Shown here one piece after another: positions 12,569 through 61,762 of a stretch of 64,000 nucleotides of DNA. Within the stretch, counting starts at the first letter, position 1; each line of letters opens with the position of its first letter. Made by a program: the position numbers and the translations under genes. The notes under the pieces were generated by a model that was not told the DNA's origin, ran no database searches, and worked only from the letters and a program-made list of their open reading frames with translations. This DNA is from Neoconidiobolus thromboides FSU 785 (lineage: Eukaryota > Fungi > Entomophthoromycota): contig MU626353.1 in assembly GCA_025603075.1 (NCBI GenBank), positions 4,681 to 68,680 of the forward strand. The letters are read 5' to 3'.

Positions 12569-12799
12569 ATTTGGGGATATATTTTTGTATCTAACAATTT
12601 TACTAACAATTTTTTTACTAAAATAGCGCTTAAAAGATGGAAAAAGTAATGAAGTCAAAAAAATACCCTATTTGTTTTCTAGTTTTTTTAAAGCATATGG
12701 GAGTGTTTTTTTTGGCTTCATTACTTTTTCCATTTTTAAACACTATTTGAGTGGAAAAATTGTTAGTAAATTCTTAAACATAAAAATACATCCCCATAT
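12569..12799. mobile_element. Inverted pair of GGGGATGT-family copies (12569-12671 minus, 12695-12799 plus)
   Basis: Two consensus matches 23 bp apart in opposite orientation. Confidence 0.8.
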
Positions 12800-27698: not shown

Positions 27699-27803
27699 AT
27701 ATGGGAGTGTTTTTTTGGTTTCATTATTTTTTATATCTTTCAAGCACTATTAAGTGGAAAATTTGTTAGTAAAATTCTTAAGCACAAAAATACATCCTCA
27801 TAT
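27699..27803 (+). mobile_element. GGGGATGT-family MITE-like copy
   Basis: Consensus match with ATAT ends. Confidence 0.8.
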
Positions 27804-28677
27804 TATTTATTATAAAAAAACAAAAACGATTTTTTATAATAAATAGCTTTTTCTGATAATGAAATTTTGTTTAAATTATTATAATTATATATATAAGGCA
27901 AAGTAAAATAAACTTTTTATAAAAATTAGTATTTAGTAGCTAAAACTAAAAGCAGTTTAATTAATTGACTATAAATTAAAAGACCTTAGTTTATATAACT
28001 AAGATAAACTTAAATCAATAAGGATAGTTTACAATAAGCTATAAAATAAATAAAACAGAAAACATCACTATAAAATATTGCAAAACTTAATAATTTTATT
28101 AAAAAGTATAATATTTTAATATTTTAAAAGCTTTAAGCTATTGTATTAAGAAAAAATTATATTTTAACTAGATGACTGTGTATAAAAAACATAGCAGTTA
28201 TTTTTTATTGTGATCACTAAATATAAACATTAAAATATAAAAATGGTGTTTTTTGTAATTAAGTGGGAAAGTTTTTTATACCAAAGCTAAATAAAAACTC
28301 TGAATTAATTATACTTGAATTTAAAAATATAATAACTCTTAATAATAAAATTACCTGAAGCTACTTAAATTTATTATATAAATTACAATTAAGTTAATCA
28401 TAAAATTGTAACTAATTTTATAAACACTTTAAGTGGTTATTATGTAATTAAATATAAATGTAGTAAAGCAATATTTCAAACTTTATAATTTTATTTGATA
28501 TTAGTTAATTTATTACAAAATTAACTAATAGGCTGTAAAACTATAATAGTGAGTATAACTAATTAAAAAAATAATCTCAGTCAATAGTTAATTTAGGTTA
28601 TAAAAAATAAAAACTCTAATAAAAATCAGGTATTATAAACAATAATTTAGTGTGGTAATCTAAAATTATAAAATAAA

Positions 28678-29370
28678 ATAAGTTTAAAAACAAAGCAATC
28701 TATTAATAATAAATATAAGGCACTATTTAACTATAATAAAGGTATCATAAAATAATATGAATATAGATATAAATATAAATGCATATTTATAAAAAAAGCA
28801 ATAACATAACTAGAAATAAAACAATTATAAATATAATAGATAAAAATAAAATTATTATAAATTATTTGAGTTTAAAAAAGATAAAACAAGGCGAGTTTAT
28901 AGTTTTAAAGTATTTTATAGTACTTTTATATCTTTTGATTTGAACTTGAGTTAAAAAATTTTAAAGCTTAAACATTCAAGGTTTAGTGTTTTTTATTACT
29001 GCTCACATTTGACATCTTGATTATTTATTAAAAAATCTATAGTGCTTTTAAAAAGCTATTATAACTAAGAAATTGTTTAAATTTAAAAACAAACATACTC
29101 TAAATTTCAAAAAACATGATAATATTAGATTACCTTTTTGTTAGACTGCTATTTTAATATTTGAAAATTGCAAGACTTTATTTTATTCCCAAAAATAATC
29201 TGATAAAGTATTTATATTAATGTGTCTAAAAAGATATTGAAACAGTTCAAGTATATTAGTGAGGTTGATTTACCATTTTATATATATCTTTGATTGCGTT
29301 TACTATGGACGGCGAAAGCAATATCATTTATGCTTTTAGTGCTTCCGTTACTAATGATCTTTGGCATTAA
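28678..29370 (+). pseudogene. Pseudogene of the tubby/LURP-like family (closest to 61100..61762)
   Basis: Start codon mutated ATG>ATA. Frames read LFEFKKDKTRRVYSFKV...KILKLK and LKQFKYISEVDLPFYISLIAFTMDG, versus MFDFKNNQTGETYNFKV...EILKLK and LKQFKYIDEVDLPIYLIFLVTLTMDA in the intact gene. Many stops. Confidence 0.8.
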
Positions 29371-29778
29371 TAATAAATCTAAATATTTTTTTAAACATTT
29401 TTTTAAACATAATACTATGAGATACATCTTTTAGAACTTTTCGACTCATTTTTTGGTTCAAAGTTGTATAGAGACGATAACATTATCATAGCTATAGTCT
29501 CAACAATATATATTAGGTCCAGATGTAAAGTAAATATTCTAAACTGTTGCTTGGTTTGTCTATCTTGTCACTTTTTCTATCTAAACTGTAGCCGCTTTTC
29601 AATCATTGTATATCTGAATTTAATAACTAAATATTTATAATAAAAATTAAAGACGCTGAACAAGATTGAATAAAAACAAAACACCAATAGGTTTAAAATT
29701 TATTAGATATTTAATTATTAGAATAAAAACACTATACTATTTAATATTTCTTACACTATATCTTTAGTTTTTGATTAC

Positions 29779-31209
29779 CTATTCCCTTACATTTTCAGAT
29801 AATCTTTCAGTTACATCTTTTGGCAATATAGTATCGGGTTCAAAAATACTCCCTTTAAACATACAACAACTATCACATAGAGAAACATATTTTCTAGCAT
29901 GTTTGAAGTAATGCTCACAATGCTGACCATCCCCAATTTTGTTTTGGACTTTTATTATATTCTTAATAACATCTGAATTTTCACCATGTGCTAATTTATT
30001 GACTCCAGATTTTAAGGCATTGAAAAATAATTCAATTGGGCTTAAGAACACTGAATATTCAGGTAGTTTTAATATAAATGAAAACGAAGATCTAATGGCT
30101 TCTTTTAGCTGATCAGAAATGGCGTGAGTATTTGTACTGTTAAACACATAGACAATCTGTTTATGTCTATTTTTCGAATATAAATCATACATAAAGTAAT
30201 CAAAATCTTCTTGGTTACTGGTGTTGGTTTTTGTCTTATCAACTATTCTATAACTTACAATCCCAAATTCTGATATAGCCCCAATATAATTAACGCTTTT
30301 AAGGGTTGATCCTGGCGTCAAAATAATTCTCTGTCCTTCAGATCCATCTTCATTTTGATTAATAGTATGACGATTAAAATAAACCTCATCAATATAAATA
30401 AATTCGCGCGGCAGTAATCTTTTGTATTCTTCAGCATATCGTTTTCTTTTTAAAATCATTTCCTTGTCATTCCATATGTTTCGAATTTGAGCACTTTGCT
30501 TATAAGTAATATCCAGCTTATTTTTAATATTACATATTGTAGTTTTGGATATATCTATCTGCTTTTTTAATAAAAAGTCCCTTATGTGTTTTATCATGGT
30601 ATCATGATTTCTTGATATATAATCATAGATAAGGTCGGTAGTTTCTTCATTTACTTTTTTATAATTACCATATTTCCTTAAATCACCAAGATCAAGATTA
30701 AGAGCCATCTTCTTCTTTTTTCTATAGACCCTTGCTATAAAAGCCTCATACTTTATATTTAACAAGTCGGCACCAAGTTTAGACGAAATCTTCCCATCCA
30801 AAACGTTTTCAAAAATCAAGTCGGCGTTGATTTTCTTAGCTAATTTATCATCTGGCTCTTCTGCTTTCTTTTTACGCTTTGATAACTTTACTTTTCCTAA
30901 TCTAGATGATTTATTAAATTCAATCATCTCTTTATTGATATCAGTTATCATTCTCTTCAGCTTATTGTACTTTTCTTCAAGTTCAGGATTTGTACTAAAT
31001 AGCCTCAAAGTCTCAGATTTAGTAAGAACACTAGTGCTATCTCCATTATATAACTTTAATTCGCTAATATCCCCTCTACTTATGACAACTAGCTCATTAC
31101 CTGGAATGCTACATTCGTTATTTCCATTATCAAATTGATTCCCATCATTTAACTGGCTATTATCTTCAACTTCGTTAACATTGTCAATAAGCTTCCTAAT
31201 TTCATCCAT
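29779..31209 (-). CDS. IS630/Tc1-mariner (DDE_3) transposase-derived protein with second catalytic Asp replaced (D-N35E), copy A
   Basis: 476-aa intact ORF with HTH-like regions, FIYIDE, IVYVFNSTNTH (canonical MDNA..H) and LPEYSVFLSPIE (canonical LPPYSPxLNPIE). No TIRs seen. Confidence 0.85.
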   Translation of the reverse strand: MDEIRKLIDNVNEVEDNSQLNDGNQFDNGNNECSIPGNELVVISRGDISELKLYNGDSTSVLTKSETLRLFSTNPELEEKYNKLKRMITDINKEMIEFNKSSRLGKVKLSKRKKKAEEPDDKLAKKINADLIFENVLDGKISSKLGADLLNIKYEAFIARVYRKKKKMALNLDLGDLRKYGNYKKVNEETTDLIYDYISRNHDTMIKHIRDFLLKKQIDISKTTICNIKNKLDITYKQSAQIRNIWNDKEMILKRKRYAEEYKRLLPREFIYIDEVYFNRHTINQNEDGSEGQRIILTPGSTLKSVNYIGAISEFGIVSYRIVDKTKTNTSNQEDFDYFMYDLYSKNRHKQIVYVFNSTNTHAISDQLKEAIRSSFSFILKLPEYSVFLSPIELFFNALKSGVNKLAHGENSDVIKNIIKVQNKIGDGQHCEHYFKHARKYVSLCDSCCMFKGSIFEPDTILPKDVTERLSENVRE

Positions 31210-31276
31210 TATAAACTTAAAAAATAAAAGGATTTTTTATTTATTTTCCGAATATAATATTTGAATCGATAGAGAA

Positions 31277-31312
31277 CTATTTAAATTACGTAATCGTTGC
31301 ATTTAAATGAAG
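31277..31312 (-). promoter_or_regulatory. Conserved upstream block of transposase-derived gene A (TATA-like plus TTACGTAA palindrome)
   Basis: CTATTTAAATTACGTAA..CATTTAAATGAA is shared with the block upstream of copy B (35987..36022) at equivalent distance from the ATG. Confidence 0.5.
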
Positions 31313-31884
31313 CAAATGATCTGTTAAAATATTAGCTTTAACCCAAACGAAATTTGCAATAAGATTTCGAATTAAATGAATTGCATGTAAAGATAACAAT
31401 TTCATTATTCACTCACCTATAAAGATCGAAGGTTTAGGACTAGGTGTGAAATTCTATCAGGTCTTTAGAACTTTAAAGCTTACTAATATGCTTGGCTGAT
31501 AAAAGGAAGCCAAAAGAATTCTAACCAAGGAATATACATTATCAATTAAAAGTATATGCACTGTAATCTAGAATTTAGAAAAATGAGTTTATAAATAAAA
31601 AGACTTATTAATAACGTATATGAAGTATCACCTAGCTATAAAGATATACTGGGTAGTAGCAAAAGTATCAGAGCATACTTATAAGAGGTAGTAATATGAC
31701 TGAAAATGGAACAATATTTAAATACTCAACAAAATTTTACTATAAAACAATTTGATTTTTAGCTTAAATATGTTTTTACATTAATTGTTTACCTAATTTT
31801 AATTGTTTATTGAAAAAATTTATGTTAAAAGTGTAGTAACCATAGTTTTCTCAGAGGCAATTTGTTGAAATAGTGTAATACTTT

Positions 31885-31987
31885 ATATGGAGATGTATTT
31901 TTGTGTTTAGAAGTTTTACTAACAATCTTTCCACTCAAATAGTGCTTAAAAGATAGAAAAAGTGATGAAGACAAAACACTCCTATAT
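31885..31987 (-). mobile_element. GGGGATGT-family MITE-like copy
   Basis: Reverse consensus match with ATAT ends. Confidence 0.8.
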
Positions 31988-32423
31988 GTTTAAGTTTAAG
32001 CTCAAATTTAATTCTTTATTCAGATTTTAGCTTAAGTTTTTATTTGGAGTTACTTCGTTTGAAAATAATAATTCAACAATAGAACTTGATTAGGAAATTG
32101 AAGGGCGGCATGCAGCGGTAAACCTACGTAAAAAACATGTGTAACAAATGAGCTAGAACTTTGTCACTAAAAGCTCAAACCTAGTCAAGCCCAATGTTAA
32201 ATAAACCCTTATAATTTTATTTGAAATTAATTAATCCAATTAATATTAATTAAATGAGTAGTTTAATCGCAATTGATGGTAGGAATTAGTTAAAGAAGTA
32301 GGTTCATTAATAGTTTATTTGGCCAACAAAAAGAAGCCTAAGGTGTTCTAATTAAGAATACAAATACTAGAGTTAAAGACATAAAAGATAAAGCTAAAAA
32401 AGCAGAAATTTAGAGATAGCAAA

Positions 32424-33058
32424 ATGAGTCTAAAAATAAAAAAGACGTCTTAATAGTGGATACAAAACACACTCTTTCTATAATGAGGCACTCGAGAAGG
32501 ATAAAAGTATTAATGCACACTTACAAGGAAGTATAAACATGGTTAGATATGAAACAACTACATACACAATAAATAAAAATGGGCTTATCACAAGATCATT
32601 TGAATTTATAGTTTTGAAGTGTCTTTTAATACTTTAAAATATCTCGATTTATACTTAGGTCAAGATATATTAGAATCAAAATATCAAAAGTTTGGGCTTA
32701 CTATTGTTAGTACTACTTAAGATCTTATTTATTATGAAAAATCCCAGAACGCCACCACCAAAAGGTTACCATGGTTAAGGAAGGTTTTGAGTTTAGAGAT
32801 ACATATACTTTAAATCTTAAAAAACACGATAATAGTATGGTAACTTTTTATTGGAGTTATGATTTGTTAGAAACAAGTAGACTTAGTTTCTAAAAACAAC
32901 TGTTATTTGAATGAAATATTTAAAATTTTAAAAAAAATACTTTAAGATAGTTTAAGTATACTGATGAAGTCGATTTACTTGTCTACTTTGTATCTTTAGC
33001 TACCCTTATTATAGATATTAAGACTAAATCTTCTCTAGCTACTACTTTTATTAATTAA
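32424..33058 (+). pseudogene. Full-length pseudogene of the tubby/LURP-like family (copy of 61100..61762)
   Basis: ATG AGT CTA start. Frames read FYNEALEKDKSINAHLQGSINMVRYETTTYTINKNG, MVKEGFEFRDTYTLNLKKHDNSM and KKNTLR*FKYTDEVDL, colinear with 61100..61762. Contains stops and frameshifts. Confidence 0.85.
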
Positions 33059-33211
33059 TTTTAATAACTTATCTATATATTAATTTTTGTATGTATTAAA
33101 AACAGACGTGATAACTTACATTTAGTTTCAAATTCTTTCAATTCTCTTTCTTAACATTATCATACCAACTTTATAGCTTATCATCATAAGGGAAGTTTTC
33201 AAAGTTTGAAG

Positions 33212-33826
33212 TTATGCAACTAAATGGTTTCTCCTCTTTACTGTTTTTGAATTATTTAATACAATCGTTGAAGTAAACAACAATATTTACAGATCATATT
33301 CGTCAACAGTTATATGCTGATTTACCACATTCGTTGAAAATAAATGAAATTTGAACCCTAAAATCAAATAATACTTATTATTAAACATATTCCAATCAGT
33401 CACATATTTACTTCTTTCCCATCTAGACTCTGTCGTTTTATTCTAATGATCGATTAAGTAAATACAAAATACTAGTTTATTACAAATGGTTTTATTATTT
33501 AGCTTAATGGCCGAATATTTATTGGTATTAATGAAGCAAATGATTTCCCATGTTGTAGAAAAAGTCAGAGATTACACTTTTTTAGCTTCAAAACAGTGGT
33601 GATTGAAATGCTCCAAAATTCTCCTGATCTGATGCCTGCCTTGCTAGTGTATTTCGCTCCCTTATCTTTTCTAAGTTGAATTGTTTTTCGCTAAAGCCAG
33701 TTGTTTTTATTGTGTAAATTTTGGCTTTAGTTTGATTCTCGCGATTGTTAACAGGTATCAAAGCTGGTGTATCTGCTTCCTTACAACTTTATTGTAGGCT
33801 AGTGGGGTCACTAATTCATTTGTCAT
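33212..33826 (-). pseudogene. Pseudogene of the tubby/LURP-like family
   Basis: MTNELVTPLAYNKVV..., TTVLKLKK, TFSTTWEI and DWNMFNNKYYLILGFKFHLFSTNVVNQHITVDEYDL*ILLFTSTIVL align to the family C-terminus (NNWTLFDSQNQPLLEY...IDEVDLPIYLIFLV). Several stops. Confidence 0.7.
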
Positions 33827-34469
33827 TTTTATAGTTAGTCTTAAGTTTACTTGGCTTACCTTATATACTCTTTTTTAGGGTTTCCTATTAGAAGTTTCAA
33901 TTTCTTTATTTGTCGATTTTTAAGTTGTACTATAAACCTACTGCAATATAAGAATGGGTGTTATCAATTTTAGTGTTATGGAATTTGATAGTTGTGTTGT
34001 AATAGTAACATTTTAGTATTATTTCTAAAAAATAGTCACTATAGCACACCATTCGATATTTATATTTTATTATTACTAGGAAGAGTAATCTAAAGATAAC
34101 TATTAAAAGGTAGATTAAATAATTCATAAAGTAATCTTATTATATATAAAGAGTAGTGATTAAATTATACAAAAATAACTACTCCATTATACCTATAGCT
34201 TCAGCTCTTACAAATTGTGTTTAGAGTAAATTAAATACTTCAACTTGCCATTTGTTTTATTGATCTTGCTACTTGTTCTATTTGAATCTACTCCTTTTTC
34301 AAGCATCATGTACCTAAGCTTTACAATTTGATATTGTAATAAGAAATCAAAAATGAAATGAAATGAAATAGAAACAAATAAAATTGATAACTTTAAAATT
34401 TAATAAACTCATTTATTAATAAAGCATGAATAATCTTATACTAAATCTCACTCAGGTATTCATGCTTTG

Positions 34470-35918
34470 CTAATTTTTGTTTAACAACTCACTTACATTT
34501 TCAACTGATCCTTCTGGCTGATCTTTTGGTAACAAAGTATTGGGTTTAAAAATATTCCCTTTAAGCATACAACAATTTTCGCATGCAGAAATATAACTTT
34601 TTGCATGTTTGAAGTAACCATCACAATGCTGAATATCCCCAACTTTATCCTGAACTTCTAATATACTTCTAATAATATCTGAATTTTCATCGTATGGTAG
34701 GTCATTAATTCCAGCTTTTAATGCATTAAAAAACAATTCAATTGGGCTCAAAAACACAGAATATTCGGGTAAAGTTAATATATATGAATTAGAGGACTTA
34801 ATCGATTTTTTTAGAGCATTAGAAACTACATGGGTATTTGCACTATTAAATACATAGACGATTTGTTTATCGCTATTTTTTGAATACAAATTATCCATGA
34901 AGTCATCAAAGTCATCTTGATTATTGTTAATAGTTTTCGTTTTATCAACTATTTTATAACTTTCAATCCCAGATTCCGATACAGCTCCAATATAGTTAAC
35001 GCTCTTGGGAGTGGACTCTGGCGTTAAGATGTATTTTTGTCCTCTGAATATACCATCTTCGCTTTCGTTGATAGTATGACGATTAAAATAAACCTCATCA
35101 ATATAAATAAACTTATATTTCATTAATTTCTTGTATTCTTCGATAAATAATTTTCTTTTTAAGATTATTCCTTTATCATTCCACATCTTTGAAACCTGGG
35201 CTGCTTGCTTATAGGTAATATCAAGCTTATGCTTAATTCTACTTAACGTAGCTTTGGATATATCTATTTGCTTTGTTAATAAAAAATGTCTTACTTGCAA
35301 TAACGTGGTATCATGGTTTCTTGATATAAAGTCATAGATGAGGCCGTTTGTTTCTTCATTTGCTTTTTTATTCTTCCCATTCTTTCTTAAATCATTAACT
35401 TCAACGCTTTCAGTCATCTTCTGTTTAGTTCTACAAACCCTTTTATGAAAAGTATTATAACTTAGGCCTAGTATATCGGCACCAGTTCTAATTGAAATTT
35501 TTCCATCCAAAACACTTTTAAAAACTAAATCGTCACCAATCTTTTTGGTTAGTTTATTGTCCTGCTTCTCTAATTTCTTTTTACGTTTCAATATCTTTGT
35601 TTTTTCTGATCCAAATAAATCATTAAATTCACGCATTTCTTTATTGATATCAGCTACCATTCTCTTTAATTTAGTATACTTTTCGCTAAGCTTGGGATTT
35701 GTACTCAATAGCTTCGAAGCCTCAGATTTGCTAAGAACATCGGAGCCGTTTTCACTATATAACTTCAATCCATCAATTTTCTCTCCAGTTGAAATATCTA
35801 CTCCATGAACTGGGATGTTATCCTCACTACCTCCATCATCAAATTGGTTCTGGTCAGATACTTGGTTAGAATTCAAGATTTTGTCAATATTATTTGTAGG
35901 CTTGGTATTATCTTCCAT
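34470..35918 (-). CDS. IS630/Tc1-mariner (DDE_3) transposase-derived protein (D-N35E), copy B
   Basis: Intact ORF of ~482 aa from the ATG at 35918, which is homologous to the copy A start (the ORF-track start at 35963 is TTG). Motifs FIYIDE, IVYVFNSANTH and LPEYSVFLSPIE. Confidence 0.85.
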   Translation of the reverse strand: MEDNTKPTNNIDKILNSNQVSDQNQFDDGGSEDNIPVHGVDISTGEKIDGLKLYSENGSDVLSKSEASKLLSTNPKLSEKYTKLKRMVADINKEMREFNDLFGSEKTKILKRKKKLEKQDNKLTKKIGDDLVFKSVLDGKISIRTGADILGLSYNTFHKRVCRTKQKMTESVEVNDLRKNGKNKKANEETNGLIYDFISRNHDTTLLQVRHFLLTKQIDISKATLSRIKHKLDITYKQAAQVSKMWNDKGIILKRKLFIEEYKKLMKYKFIYIDEVYFNRHTINESEDGIFRGQKYILTPESTPKSVNYIGAVSESGIESYKIVDKTKTINNNQDDFDDFMDNLYSKNSDKQIVYVFNSANTHVVSNALKKSIKSSNSYILTLPEYSVFLSPIELFFNALKAGINDLPYDENSDIIRSILEVQDKVGDIQHCDGYFKHAKSYISACENCCMLKGNIFKPNTLLPKDQPEGSVENVSELLNKN

Positions 35919-35986
35919 TATGAAATTTTCATAAATAAAAAGATTGTCATTTATTTTTCTCAAACAACTTTTGAATCAACAAAAAC

Positions 35987-36022
35987 CTATTTAAATTACG
36001 TAACCATCACATTTAAATGAAA
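35987..36022 (-). promoter_or_regulatory. Conserved upstream block of transposase-derived gene B
   Basis: Exact 17-bp CTATTTAAATTACGTAA plus CATTTAAATGAA, shared with 31277..31312. Confidence 0.5.
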
Positions 36023-36747
36023 CAGCTGATAAATTGTAAATATTTGGGGATATTTTTTCTACTTAAAAAGTTTACTAACAAATTATCTAACTTCATTTTA
36101 TTAAAAAGTGGACAAAGATATACAATAAAAAAGGCGCTCTCATTTCCTTTACATTGATGAAAATTTTCAGATTAAAACTTTAAAATGATATATAAAATTG
36201 ACAAATTGCCCTTATTTATTATAAAAAACTATATAAATTGTCATAAAAAGATATAATTTATTAAAGTTATAAATTTTTTATTCAGCTTTAGTACCACTAT
36301 TTTTAAAAAAACTGCGAAGTCTTTTGTAAAGGCGTCTAAAGCTTTTATAAGCATCTAAGGTAATATGATTTAAAAGAAAAAGAATTGAGATAATGGATAT
36401 TAACAAACATGTTAAAATTACTTTTTATTAACCTTGGTTTTTGTATTAATAACATTAAAAATTTTAATTTTAATGCTAAACAAAATGGTTAAAATGAGCC
36501 TTTTCAAGCTTCTAAAATTCAAATTTTGTCCTTATATTAAAGACTTATATAAAAATTAATATAAAAGTTACTTACCTTGCTTATCATTTAAATATATATG
36601 TCGATTTTTAAAAAAATTTGCTATATGAGTTATTTTTTATTTGATTTAATAAAGTAAATAAATAAATTTTAAAAGTTATACTGAATAACTTTATAATAAA
36701 ACTATCTTTGTAAAAGTAAAATGAAATGATAGGAATTAAATAAAAAT

Positions 36748-37095
36748 ATTTTGGGATATTTTTTTGGCTTCATTACTTTTTCCCTTCTTTAAGCCCTATT
36801 TGACCAAAAAGATTATTAATAAAATTCTTAAAATACATTGTTTATTAACTGTAAGAATTAAGCTAAGATGCTATTTATTAAAGCATATTTGTAATACCTG
36901 ATTAAAAATTTTAATATGACCAGATTAAATCAGTATACGCAAATTTATAAAGGCAAGTATTTGTATTAAAATAATAAAGCTTTGATTTAATAATATATAG
37001 GGATGTATTTTTTTAAGAATTTTACTAACAATCTTTGGACTCAAATAGCGCTTAAAAAAACGGAAAGTAATGAAACTAAAAAAACATCCCCGTAT
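36748..37095. mobile_element. Two GGGGATGT-family copies (36748-36840 plus, 36995-37095 minus); a further fragment lies at ~36042-36085
   Basis: Consensus matches. Confidence 0.75.
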
Positions 37096-37666
37096 ATTAG
37101 AGGAGGTTTTGAAATATATATTAATATTTTTTACAATTAAAAATTATTACTAAAGCATTTCAGTATTAAGTTTTTTAATAATTAAAAATCAAATATACAT
37201 ATCGGCAAGATTTTTTTATACCTTTTGCTAAAAGTCAATAATATTGCATTTTTATAATGTTATAATATAAGATTTAAAAATAGTAAGTTGGAAATCATTT
37301 TAAATTATCTCCACAAATTTTATAATTGTCTGTGCTCTCTTTACTAAGATCTATTATTTTGAAAATACCCCCGTATAAACCATAAACACCTCATAAAATG
37401 ATGTTTAATTTTAAGTCCTTCTGACGAAACTTATAAAGTCTATTATTCATTGTAAATTGCTATTTCTGTGATCGACTACTATTTAAACTCATTAAATTTA
37501 TTAATCAATTATATAAAGTTCATAAAACTAAACTGTAATTTCTACAACAACAATTTATTACAAGACGTAGGAGAAGATAAAACTTAACTTATTTAAAAAC
37601 AGGATAAGATTTGGAATTAAATAAATAGCATGCAAAAAGATCTAAAATTCGATTCCTTATCCCTTT

Positions 37667-57848: not shown

Positions 57849-58667
57849 ATGAGTTTAAAAATTACAAATAATATAAACATAAATATGGATAAAAAAGAAA
57901 AAGTCGGTTTTAATAATAATAATTTAAATGAATTTGACAATAATCTAAATGAGTTCCTGCCTAGTTATAATGAAAGCTTAACCCCAGAGTCAAGTACAAG
58001 AGGAATAATAATGAATACAAACAATTTTCCAGAACCAAATATAAGAGCCCCAGGGATAGATATGAATAGTTTTATACAGCCAAATTCAGAAGATTCAGGA
58101 ATGAATATAAATAACTACAGGTTAATTCAAACTAGATATGATGTTAGCATAGATGGGCTTCGTAAGAAAAAAATCGGCTTCAAGGATAACCAAACTGGAC
58201 AAGTATACAATTACAAAGTTACAGAAAAAAAAGCTAAATATAGAGGAGATAGTAGAAAAACAGTGATTAAACTTAAGCGTAATAAAAAATTTTCAAAGAC
58301 TGGTAACTGGATGATAGACTGTAAGAAGAAACATGAGGGAAGATATAAAGATATAACATTATTTAAAGATTCGGTTAATTCAGTTCCAAGGTATACTATG
58401 GGTTTTAGAAGATCAGATAATCAAATCATGAATCTATATTGGACCACGGAATCTATCATGAATAATAATTGGTGCTTATTTGATGTTAATTTTAATAAGC
58501 TTATGGAATATAACATTCAAACATTTAAACATAATTCTTTAAGCCAATTCTGTTTTATTGATGAAGTTGACAAACAACTTTTTTTATTGGTTTTAGCTTT
58601 TGTTATCGTAAATTATGGATCTGATAATATGGGAGATTCCTCTAGTGATGATAGTGACAGTTCTTAA
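57849..58667 (+). CDS. Tubby C-terminal / LURP-one-like protein with N-terminal LPSY motif
   Basis: 272-aa ORF with LPSY, FKDNQTGQVYNYKV, NNWCLFD and IDEVDKQLFLLVLAFV; clear paralog of 61100..61762. Confidence 0.8.
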   Translation: MSLKITNNININMDKKEKVGFNNNNLNEFDNNLNEFLPSYNESLTPESSTRGIIMNTNNFPEPNIRAPGIDMNSFIQPNSEDSGMNINNYRLIQTRYDVSIDGLRKKKIGFKDNQTGQVYNYKVTEKKAKYRGDSRKTVIKLKRNKKFSKTGNWMIDCKKKHEGRYKDITLFKDSVNSVPRYTMGFRRSDNQIMNLYWTTESIMNNNWCLFDVNFNKLMEYNIQTFKHNSLSQFCFIDEVDKQLFLLVLAFVIVNYGSDNMGDSSSDDSDSS

Positions 58668-61099: not shown

Positions 61100-61762
61100 T
61101 CAAGATCCACCACCACTAGAAGCAGCACGTCTTCTACGCTCAGCGTCCATAGTAAGAGTGACTAAAAATATAAGATATATAGGTAAATCAACTTCATCAA
61201 TATACTTAAATTGTTTTAAAGTATTCTTTTTAAACATATTGATATGGTATTCCAATAATGGTTGATTTTGAGAGTCAAATAAGGTCCAATTGTTTCCAAG
61301 TATTGAAGTAGTAGTCCAGTGGAGATTTGCCATAGTATTATCTTGTTTTTTGAGATTCAATACGTATTTATCTCTAAATTCAAACGTTTTTTTAACCATG
61401 GAAACCTCTTGATAACGTTCTGAGTTTTTTACCAAATAATCGACATTCCATCTAGTAGTTGTAAAAGAGAACCCCTGGCGCTTTAACTTTAAAATTTCTT
61501 GACCTGAGAGTAAATCAAGGAATTTAGAAGTATTATAAGATACTTTAAAATTATAAGTCTCCCCAGTTTGATTATTTTTAAAATCAAACATCTTCTTAAA
61601 GCATCCTCTTTTACTTACTGTATATGTAATTAATTCATTGTCAGCCATATTACTACTCCCTTGAAACTGGGAACAAATATCCGTATTATTCTCCAATGTA
61701 TCATTGTAGCTAGGTGGTGCTTCAAGTTGGTTATTAAAGGGCTTTTCAGTTTCTAAACTCAT
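61100..61762 (-). CDS. Tubby C-terminal / LURP-one-like protein with PPSY motif
   Basis: 220-aa ORF with PPSY, FKNNQTGETYNFKV and IDEVDLPIYLIFLV; source-like copy of the pseudogenes at 28.7 and 32.4 kb. Confidence 0.8.
   Translation of the reverse strand: MSLETEKPFNNQLEAPPSYNDTLENNTDICSQFQGSSNMADNELITYTVSKRGCFKKMFDFKNNQTGETYNFKVSYNTSKFLDLLSGQEILKLKRQGFSFTTTRWNVDYLVKNSERYQEVSMVKKTFEFRDKYVLNLKKQDNTMANLHWTTTSILGNNWTLFDSQNQPLLEYHINMFKKNTLKQFKYIDEVDLPIYLIFLVTLTMDAERRRRAASSGGGS

Follow-up and report, generated by a model that had tools for sequence, protein, structure and literature searches.

The 64,000-nucleotide stretch of DNA of the insect-associated fungus Neoconidiobolus thromboides FSU 785 analysed here (assembly GCA_025603075.1, contig MU626353.1, positions 4,681 to 68,680; hereafter the window) contains two related genes, A and B, which encode proteins of the IS630/Tc1 transposase type and probably belong to a family domesticated by the host. 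The window is AT-rich (21-30% GC), and both genes lie on its minus strand. An earlier note, made from the letters of the sequence, had described two intact open reading frames (ORFs) with the motifs YIDE, VFNSTNTH or VFNSANTH, and SPIE, in which the second catalytic Asp was replaced by an Asn with a 35-residue spacing to the Glu. The ORF list, the Pfam DDE_3 matches and the alignment bear this out. The genes and the altered codons are as follows:

29779..31209, minus strand: gene A, intact intronless IS630/Tc1-derived (DDE_3) ORF of 476 amino acids (aa) (ORF list, Pfam, alignment)
34470..35918, minus strand: gene B, intact paralogue of A, 482 aa from the ATG at 35918 (ORF list, Pfam, 5′ ends of RNA contigs)
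30139..30141, minus strand: codon 357 of A (AAC, Asn), the second catalytic Asp position (alignment to relatives)
34845..34847, minus strand: codon 358 of B (Asn), the second catalytic Asp position

The two products are 60% identical over their full length, with a single one-residue gap, and match Pfam DDE_3 with 39.6 bits (A) and 44.1 bits (B) at a gathering score of 28.6. The triad of A consists of D274 (YIDE), N357 (VFNSTNTH) and E393 (SPIE), with 35 residues from Asn to Glu; that of B is D274-N358-E394, the Asn lying within VFNSANTH. The mechanical ORF of B (34470-35963, minus strand) opens with a TTG at 35963, and the ATG at 35918 is backed by the 5′ ends of RNA contigs at about 35941-35961, 25-45 nt upstream. 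The annotated model of B (P0003, 537 aa) includes a spliced 3′ exon, 33588-33761, which the RNA contigs do not support. These contigs are colinear through the stop of B at 34470, after which a 49-nt intron (33811-33859) is removed; therefore, the 482-aa ORF is the supported product of B.

Loss of the second catalytic Asp in a four-gene family

The genes had initially been taken for a pair. A and B are real, but the family has four members: the protein database contains two further paralogues encoded by this genome, namely P0002 (copy C, locus L001) and P0004 (copy D, locus L002), encoded on other contigs amid ordinary genes. All four proteins are intact (456-510 aa), share 53-63% aa identity and have Asn at the second catalytic position. 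D274 and E393 are kept in A-C, and copy D has diverged further, with NEANNN and PID at the corresponding motifs, where the conserved His is gone and the Glu has become Asp.

An exhaustive profile search of 1.8 billion protein representatives yielded 744 relatives, the top 146 of which were used in the residue alignment. The earlier note had named active relatives with a natural Asn as evidence that would speak against its reading; 138 of the 146 relatives possess Asp at this position and none possesses Asn, which occurs only in the four N. thromboides proteins. The best match outside the family scored 128 bits, with about 26% identity. Word-indexed protein searches gave, among the matches listed, only the four family members or the query, and do not size the wider superfamily. 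The Asn is common to all four paralogues; therefore, the loss of the Asp preceded the duplications, in the order proposed earlier. By the alignment, the D to N change is derived, family-specific and older than the duplications.

A distant relative encoded in the same genome, P0060 (K502DRAFT_333077; 470 aa, on a 23.4-kb contig), is 26% identical over the core. Its triad reads D-G-E, and the conserved His is replaced by Tyr. This fungus has thus lost the second Asp a further, independent time in P0060.

Purifying selection

In the 17-codon block LPEYSVFLSPIELFFNA, A and B differ in eight codons, all eight differences being synonymous and none non-synonymous; the recount agrees with the original one. 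Over the whole gene, the Nei-Gojobori method (NG86) gave a non-synonymous divergence (dN) of 0.246, a synonymous divergence (dS) of 0.80 and a ratio (omega) of 0.31 for A versus B, and an omega of 0.21-0.36 across all six A-D pairs. By region, pairwise omega was 0.13-0.35 in the core and 0.13-0.28 in the helix-turn-helix (HTH) region. The maximum-likelihood (ML) fit of a codon model to A-D gave an omega of 0.22 and a kappa of 4.2. With omega fixed at 1, the log-likelihood (lnL) fell from -4874.0 to -4992.2 (118 lnL units worse), and omega = 1 is rejected. Neither whole-gene estimate is near 1, and the purifying selection suspected from the short block extends to the entire gene.

The length of the ML tree is almost entirely terminal (0.66-0.97 for the four terminal branches versus 0.14 for the internal one), and inter-copy dS amounts to 0.8-1.2. 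In a simulation of neutral substitution using the base composition of the window, 0.7% of trials kept an open ORF when K was 0.05 per lineage; when K was 0.1 or more, 0 of 2000 did. Along the protein, constraint is strongest in the RNase H-like core.

Selection within the lineage was assessed with contigs of public runs from closely related organisms mapped onto the window. Near-identical copies of A and B are present in the runs of four other organisms (word share 0.14-0.94, roughly 0.2-6% divergence), and these orthologues from other isolates or species, at most about 6% divergent, supply what the earlier reading would have lacked had there been none. The variants listed for B include at least 24 synonymous and at least 9 non-synonymous changes, none of the listed non-synonymous ones falling in codons 250-400; those listed for A include at least 23 synonymous and at least 11 non-synonymous changes, some of them from cross-laid B contigs. 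Given about one synonymous per 4.2 non-synonymous sites, the listed ratio corresponds to an omega near 0.1, some variants coming from a second contig version, 5-9% divergent. The Asn codon of A is changed from AAC to AAT in one relative and still encodes Asn.

The second version was seen in short contig pairs at 29966-30174, 30610-30856 and 34722-35180 (DNA and RNA runs of the organisms labelled B, C and D). One contig of each pair is near-identical and the other 5-9% divergent, mostly by transitions. The divergent version could come from another allele, from a heterokaryon partner or from an additional paralogue of A or B that formed recently.

Tandem duplication and decay of the neighbouring gene

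A and B are the products of an old tandem segmental duplication. The segment 29485-31333 matches 34186-36044 with 72% identity, the identities of non-coding flanks being inflated by AT-rich DNA (shuffled controls 58-61%) and used qualitatively only. A second duplicated stretch pairs 28456-29407 with 32177-33101 (E about 1e-50), the B side containing an additional 1.1 kb or so. Besides A and B, the duplicated region contains:

29485..29778, minus strand: 3′ flank of A within the duplicated unit; the homologous flank of B is at 34186-34469
28672..29344, plus strand: frameshifted pseudogene of a 220-aa gene family, co-duplicated with A
32440..33046, plus strand: frameshifted pseudogene of the same 220-aa gene family, co-duplicated with B

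The pieces of the pseudogenes lie in different frames, and no ORF of at least 60 aa is left. The order of genes at the locus is HAD hydrolase, B, pseudogene, A, pseudogene, GH38 mannosidase. An intact 220-aa copy is located at 61100-61762 (minus strand) and another intact relative at 57849-58667 (plus strand); Pfam assigns no family to the intact 220-aa copy. The pseudogene segment has about 101 gapped columns versus a single in-frame indel in the 1431-nt coding sequence (CDS). The co-duplicated neighbour has decayed and both transposase ORFs have stayed open; therefore, selection acted in place. This combination would scarcely be expected of a transposon copy that had drifted since it inserted.

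Absence of transposon ends and the micro-MITEs of the window

A search for terminal inverted repeats (TIRs) from 400 nt upstream to 500 nt downstream of each gene found the best inverted match to be within the shuffled null in four of four cases. In the aligned flanks of A-D, no inverted block was conserved in position, the observed score being reached in 25-70 of 300 shuffles, and no long inverted repeats bracketing C or D were found. All three tests are in line with the initial statement that the genes have no TIRs or target-site duplications (TSDs). Contig depth over A and B at 90% likeness or more, which is a rough measure, was about 1-2 times that of the single-copy flanks. Of the features of an active transposon, the A-D units show neither TIRs with a TA TSD nor a complete triad, the second Asp being Asn in every copy; in place of many near-identical, TIR-bearing copies there are four diverged ones.

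The window is rich in a short element of another kind, a miniature inverted-repeat transposable element (MITE), termed here micro-MITE. According to an alignment of 25 copies, the unit measures about 105 bp and has 15-nt inverted ends (TGGGGATGTATTTTT) and a TA duplication. About 25 copies occur in the 64 kb (1326-63851), one per 2.5 kb. The summed contig depth of the micro-MITE in DNA runs reaches 95,000-131,000 versus about 25 in the flanks. Its ends show no similarity to the conserved flanks or to the upstream element of A-D. Copies include:

3541-3654, 12574-12668, 36745-36845 and 37011-37098: examples of the micro-MITE
31884..31976, no strand assigned: micro-MITE that inserted independently and does not form an end of the gene unit
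27699-27803: micro-MITE near A
36037-36087: partial micro-MITE near B

The inverted repeats at 27700-27812 and 31876-31976 were considered as TIRs of a 4.3-kb element around A and rejected, each arm being a complete 105-bp micro-MITE. The absence of such a pair at homologous positions around B, C and D further rules out this reading.

Predicted fold and protein architecture

The AlphaFold model built with a 150-sequence alignment has a mean predicted local distance difference test (pLDDT) score of 79, exceeding 90 across most of the core; it replaced a model made with the 4-sequence alignment only, which was unusable (pLDDT 42). D274 lies in the strand 269-279, N357 just after the strand 352-356 and E393 in the helix 391-405. 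A Foldseek search with the model retrieved the chains of the Mos1 transpososome (E 4e-11) and the catalytic domains of Sleeping Beauty and SETMAR/Metnase, with template modelling (TM) scores of 0.68-0.74 normalised to the target. The structure neighbours in the Atlas are IS630/Tc1 clusters, over residues about 124-460. An RNase H-like catalytic fold is thus recovered by structure prediction. A PDB sequence search with the family profile gave spurious coiled-coil matches only.

Along protein A, a long helix or coiled coil (about 64-110) is followed by an invariant KRKKK (111-115), by two three-helix units of the model (119-170 and 188-232), which form a predicted paired-like HTH DNA-binding region, and by the RNase H-like core (about 266-405). 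In the model, an RNase H-like domain is thus preceded by a bipartite HTH region, as would be expected of an IS630/Tc1/mariner transposase.

At the C-terminal end of the catalytic domain, H430, C431, H437 and C445 of A (pattern C-x5-H-x7-C; residues 430-445, window positions about 29875-29922) are invariant in the four paralogues. The pattern is largely kept in the DDE-intact relatives too, and may constitute a metal-binding motif.

Transcription and the conserved upstream element

The contigs of run X3, which comes from the same organism, are identical to the window and spliced at three sites:

31568..31631, minus strand: 64-nt GT..AG intron of a long upstream or read-through transcript entering A (X3 joints)
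31740..31792, minus strand: 53-nt GT..AG intron of a long upstream or read-through transcript entering A (X3 joints)
33811..33859, minus strand: 49-nt GT..AG intron of a transcript continuing downstream of B (X3 joints)

The splice joints, all GT..AG on the gene strand, show the X3 contigs to be RNA. Their depth is highest over B and lower on through to A. In runs X6 and X8 (organism D), the contigs are confined to the two CDSs, with none between, and B is several-fold deeper than A. Transcription, which had been put down for checking, is evident for both genes.

The minus-strand contigs of X3 are continuous from B through the pseudogene into A (29480-35479), with the three short introns removed. 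This suggests a read-through or long upstream-initiated transcript besides A's own promoter.

Flank homology among A-D reaches from some 150 nt ahead of the ATG to 170-290 nt past the stop. Upstream lies a 33-nt element composed of two ATTTAAAT palindromes around ATTACGTAAT:

31279..31311, minus strand: 33-nt element of A, 70-102 nt upstream of the ATG
35989..36021, minus strand: 33-nt element of B; the RNA contigs begin about 30-80 nt further downstream

The element occurs in the window only at these two sites, the chance expectation being 0 matches; it is present upstream of C too and, in a variant form, upstream of D. Its position in B is promoter-proximal. A retroposition origin of C and D was considered and is unsupported, if not strictly excluded: the copies include this element upstream of the short mRNA start, and the 3′ alignments contain no poly(A) remnant.

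Probable domestication and alternative explanations

A and B are probably members of a lineage-specific, host-maintained, domesticated four-gene family derived from an IS630/Tc1/mariner-type transposase, whose products would be nuclear DNA-binding proteins that no longer cut DNA. The ancestral element would have lost the second catalytic Asp (D to N) along with its terminal repeats. The gene would then have been copied, A and B arising from a tandem duplication and C and D from dispersed ones, and purifying selection seems to have held every copy at its own locus since then. The protein appears to keep a basic nuclear-localisation-like motif, an N-terminal coiled coil, a paired-type double HTH and a well-folded RNase H-like core. 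It would act as a nuclear, sequence-specific DNA-binding protein, with the dead catalytic core serving as a structural, dimerisation or DNA-clamping module, and would be expressed from the family-specific palindromic promoter element.

Domestication had been proposed in the earlier note, and the omega of 0.21-0.36, the lack of TIR-bearing copies, the Asn seen in none of the 146 relatives, the transcription and the intact ORFs support it. Of the marks by which Tc1/mariner domestication has been judged (PMC13548663), four are found here: transposase homology, loss of TIRs and TSDs together with low copy number, an intact constrained ORF, and expression. On the present sequence evidence, A-D would make a good case of a domesticated transposase.

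Several points weigh against this reading. Deep orthology with conserved microsynteny, a further usual mark, was not seen: among the 1.8 billion protein representatives, no orthologue was found outside close relatives, and, outside the family, the protein libraries contain no relative closer than about 26% identity. The loss of catalysis is read from the D to N change alone, and SETMAR, with its DDN triad, keeps partial nuclease activity. The kind of the RNA runs was guessed by the tool, and it is the splice joints that reveal RNA. In the dispersed copies C and D, the shared homology is limited to a ~1.9-kb unit whose boundaries are fairly alike, and this could reflect past mobilisation.

The micro-MITEs invite a more specific role. 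The genes may have been domesticated to regulate or tame transposition, for example by partnering a related active transposase in a dominant-negative manner or by binding the TA-flanked micro-MITEs, as the earlier note had suggested. The window holds about 25 of these at very high read depth, and a duplicated TA is a typical feature of this transposase superfamily. Upstream of B and C, MITE ends are present within about 120-190 nt, and the genome encodes at least one more dead relative, P0060. The sequences gave no evidence that the proteins bind MITE ends. However, such proximity is expected by chance at the density of one MITE per 2.5 kb, the MITE ends are unlike the conserved flanks and promoter element of A-D, and no partner with an intact DDE triad was identified from this genome; this role is unlikely. 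A broader version, in which the D-N-E family and P0060 are parts of an expanded host system that recognises transposon-derived DNA (the thousands of TA-flanked micro-MITEs or the family's own ex-transposon promoter palindrome) to silence, position or regulate it, seems somewhat less likely still. If true, it would be a fungal counterpart of the KRAB-ZNF-like transposon-taming families, built from transposases.

A D-N-E site with reduced or altered nuclease activity, similar to the DDN of SETMAR, would make the genes host nucleases or recombinases, and the strong constraint on the RNase H-like core (omega about 0.09-0.16) and the retention of D274 and E393 in A-C are consistent with this. However, retroviral integrases and related DDE enzymes become inactive when the metal-binding Asp is changed to Asn. 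In copy D, moreover, the conserved His is missing and the Glu has become Asp, and no neighbouring acidic residue was seen in A-C, which makes this explanation quite improbable. That the genes still belong to a transposon, a low-copy lineage moved in trans or via unrecognised ends whose dN/dS below 1 comes from selection for transposition, is even harder to accept. The unit does look discrete, with homology from about -150 to +170/+290 around the CDS in all four copies, and the family is limited to this lineage; but TIRs and conserved inverted blocks are missing, A and B came from a segmental duplication that included a neighbouring gene, and both have remained intact where they lie while that gene decayed. 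Each sublineage has a single copy, the inter-copy dS being 0.8-1.2, and the catalytic Asp is absent from all copies. Decaying relics or annotation artefacts without function would agree with the restriction to one lineage and the lack of an assigned function. This last possibility is barely tenable, since the selection tests already contradict it: at a dS of about 0.8-1.2 and a genomic GC content of 26%, all four ORFs (456-510 aa) are still open, and transcription as well as a surplus of synonymous variants was observed.

Comparison with known systems

Transposase domestication itself is well known, and the value of the domesticated family proposed here is that of a new, well-supported example and of a lead into transposon-host interplay in a MITE-rich genome. 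To our knowledge, domesticated Tc1/IS630-type (DDE_3) transposases have rarely been documented in fungi, and none in the early-diverging Zoopagomycota. A single inactivating D to N change would have come before a four-fold expansion, and the dead core being the most constrained part poses the question of what role an RNase H-like domain plays once unable to cut. The co-duplicated neighbour, decayed where the transposase genes were kept, provides a clean natural control, and the 33-nt element is a candidate cis-element for direct binding tests.

The eukaryotic IS630/Tc1-like DDE_3 relatives P0005-P0020, of metagenomic and protist origin, are 20-26% identical to the family and have a layout in common with A-D: a coiled coil, a double HTH, the DDE_3 core and a C-terminal C..H..C / PF.G motif. 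They keep D-D-E and bear the source label transposase, whereas A-D have D-N-E. CENP-B and the fission-yeast Abp1/Cbh1/Cbh2 also belong to the IS630-Tc1-mariner group, and the likeness lies in a small TIR-less paralogous family in a fungus, DNA-binding in their case. However, they are pogo-derived, with Pfam DDE_1 in place of DDE_3 and an HTH of the CENP-B type, and are known to act at the centromere, on retrotransposons and in replication. The PiggyMac-like (PgmL) proteins of Paramecium are likewise several catalytically inactive transposase paralogues under selection, but they belong to the piggyBac superfamily and work with the active PiggyMac; no active partner has been identified for A-D.

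The Tc1/mariner-derived genes CG14478, CG4570, cag, toy and LOC26532114 of Drosophila were judged domesticated by the lack of TIRs and TSDs, low copy number, a constrained ORF and expression (PMC13548663). LOC26532114 is lineage-restricted, like the N. thromboides family; most of the Drosophila genes, in contrast, have deep orthologues with microsynteny, CG14478 keeps the DDE triad (PMC13548663), and none is orthologous to the fungal family.

The primate SETMAR/Metnase, derived from Hsmar1, is, like A-D, a host gene of the mariner/Tc1 superfamily in which one catalytic carboxylate has been replaced by Asn. The fold of its catalytic domain matches the A-D model with a TM score of 0.70-0.74 normalised to the target, at an identity of only 11-13%. 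In SETMAR, the third residue of the triad was lost (DDN) and the transposase was fused to a SET domain, whereas the N. thromboides family lost the second residue (D-N-E), has no fusion partner and comprises four paralogues.

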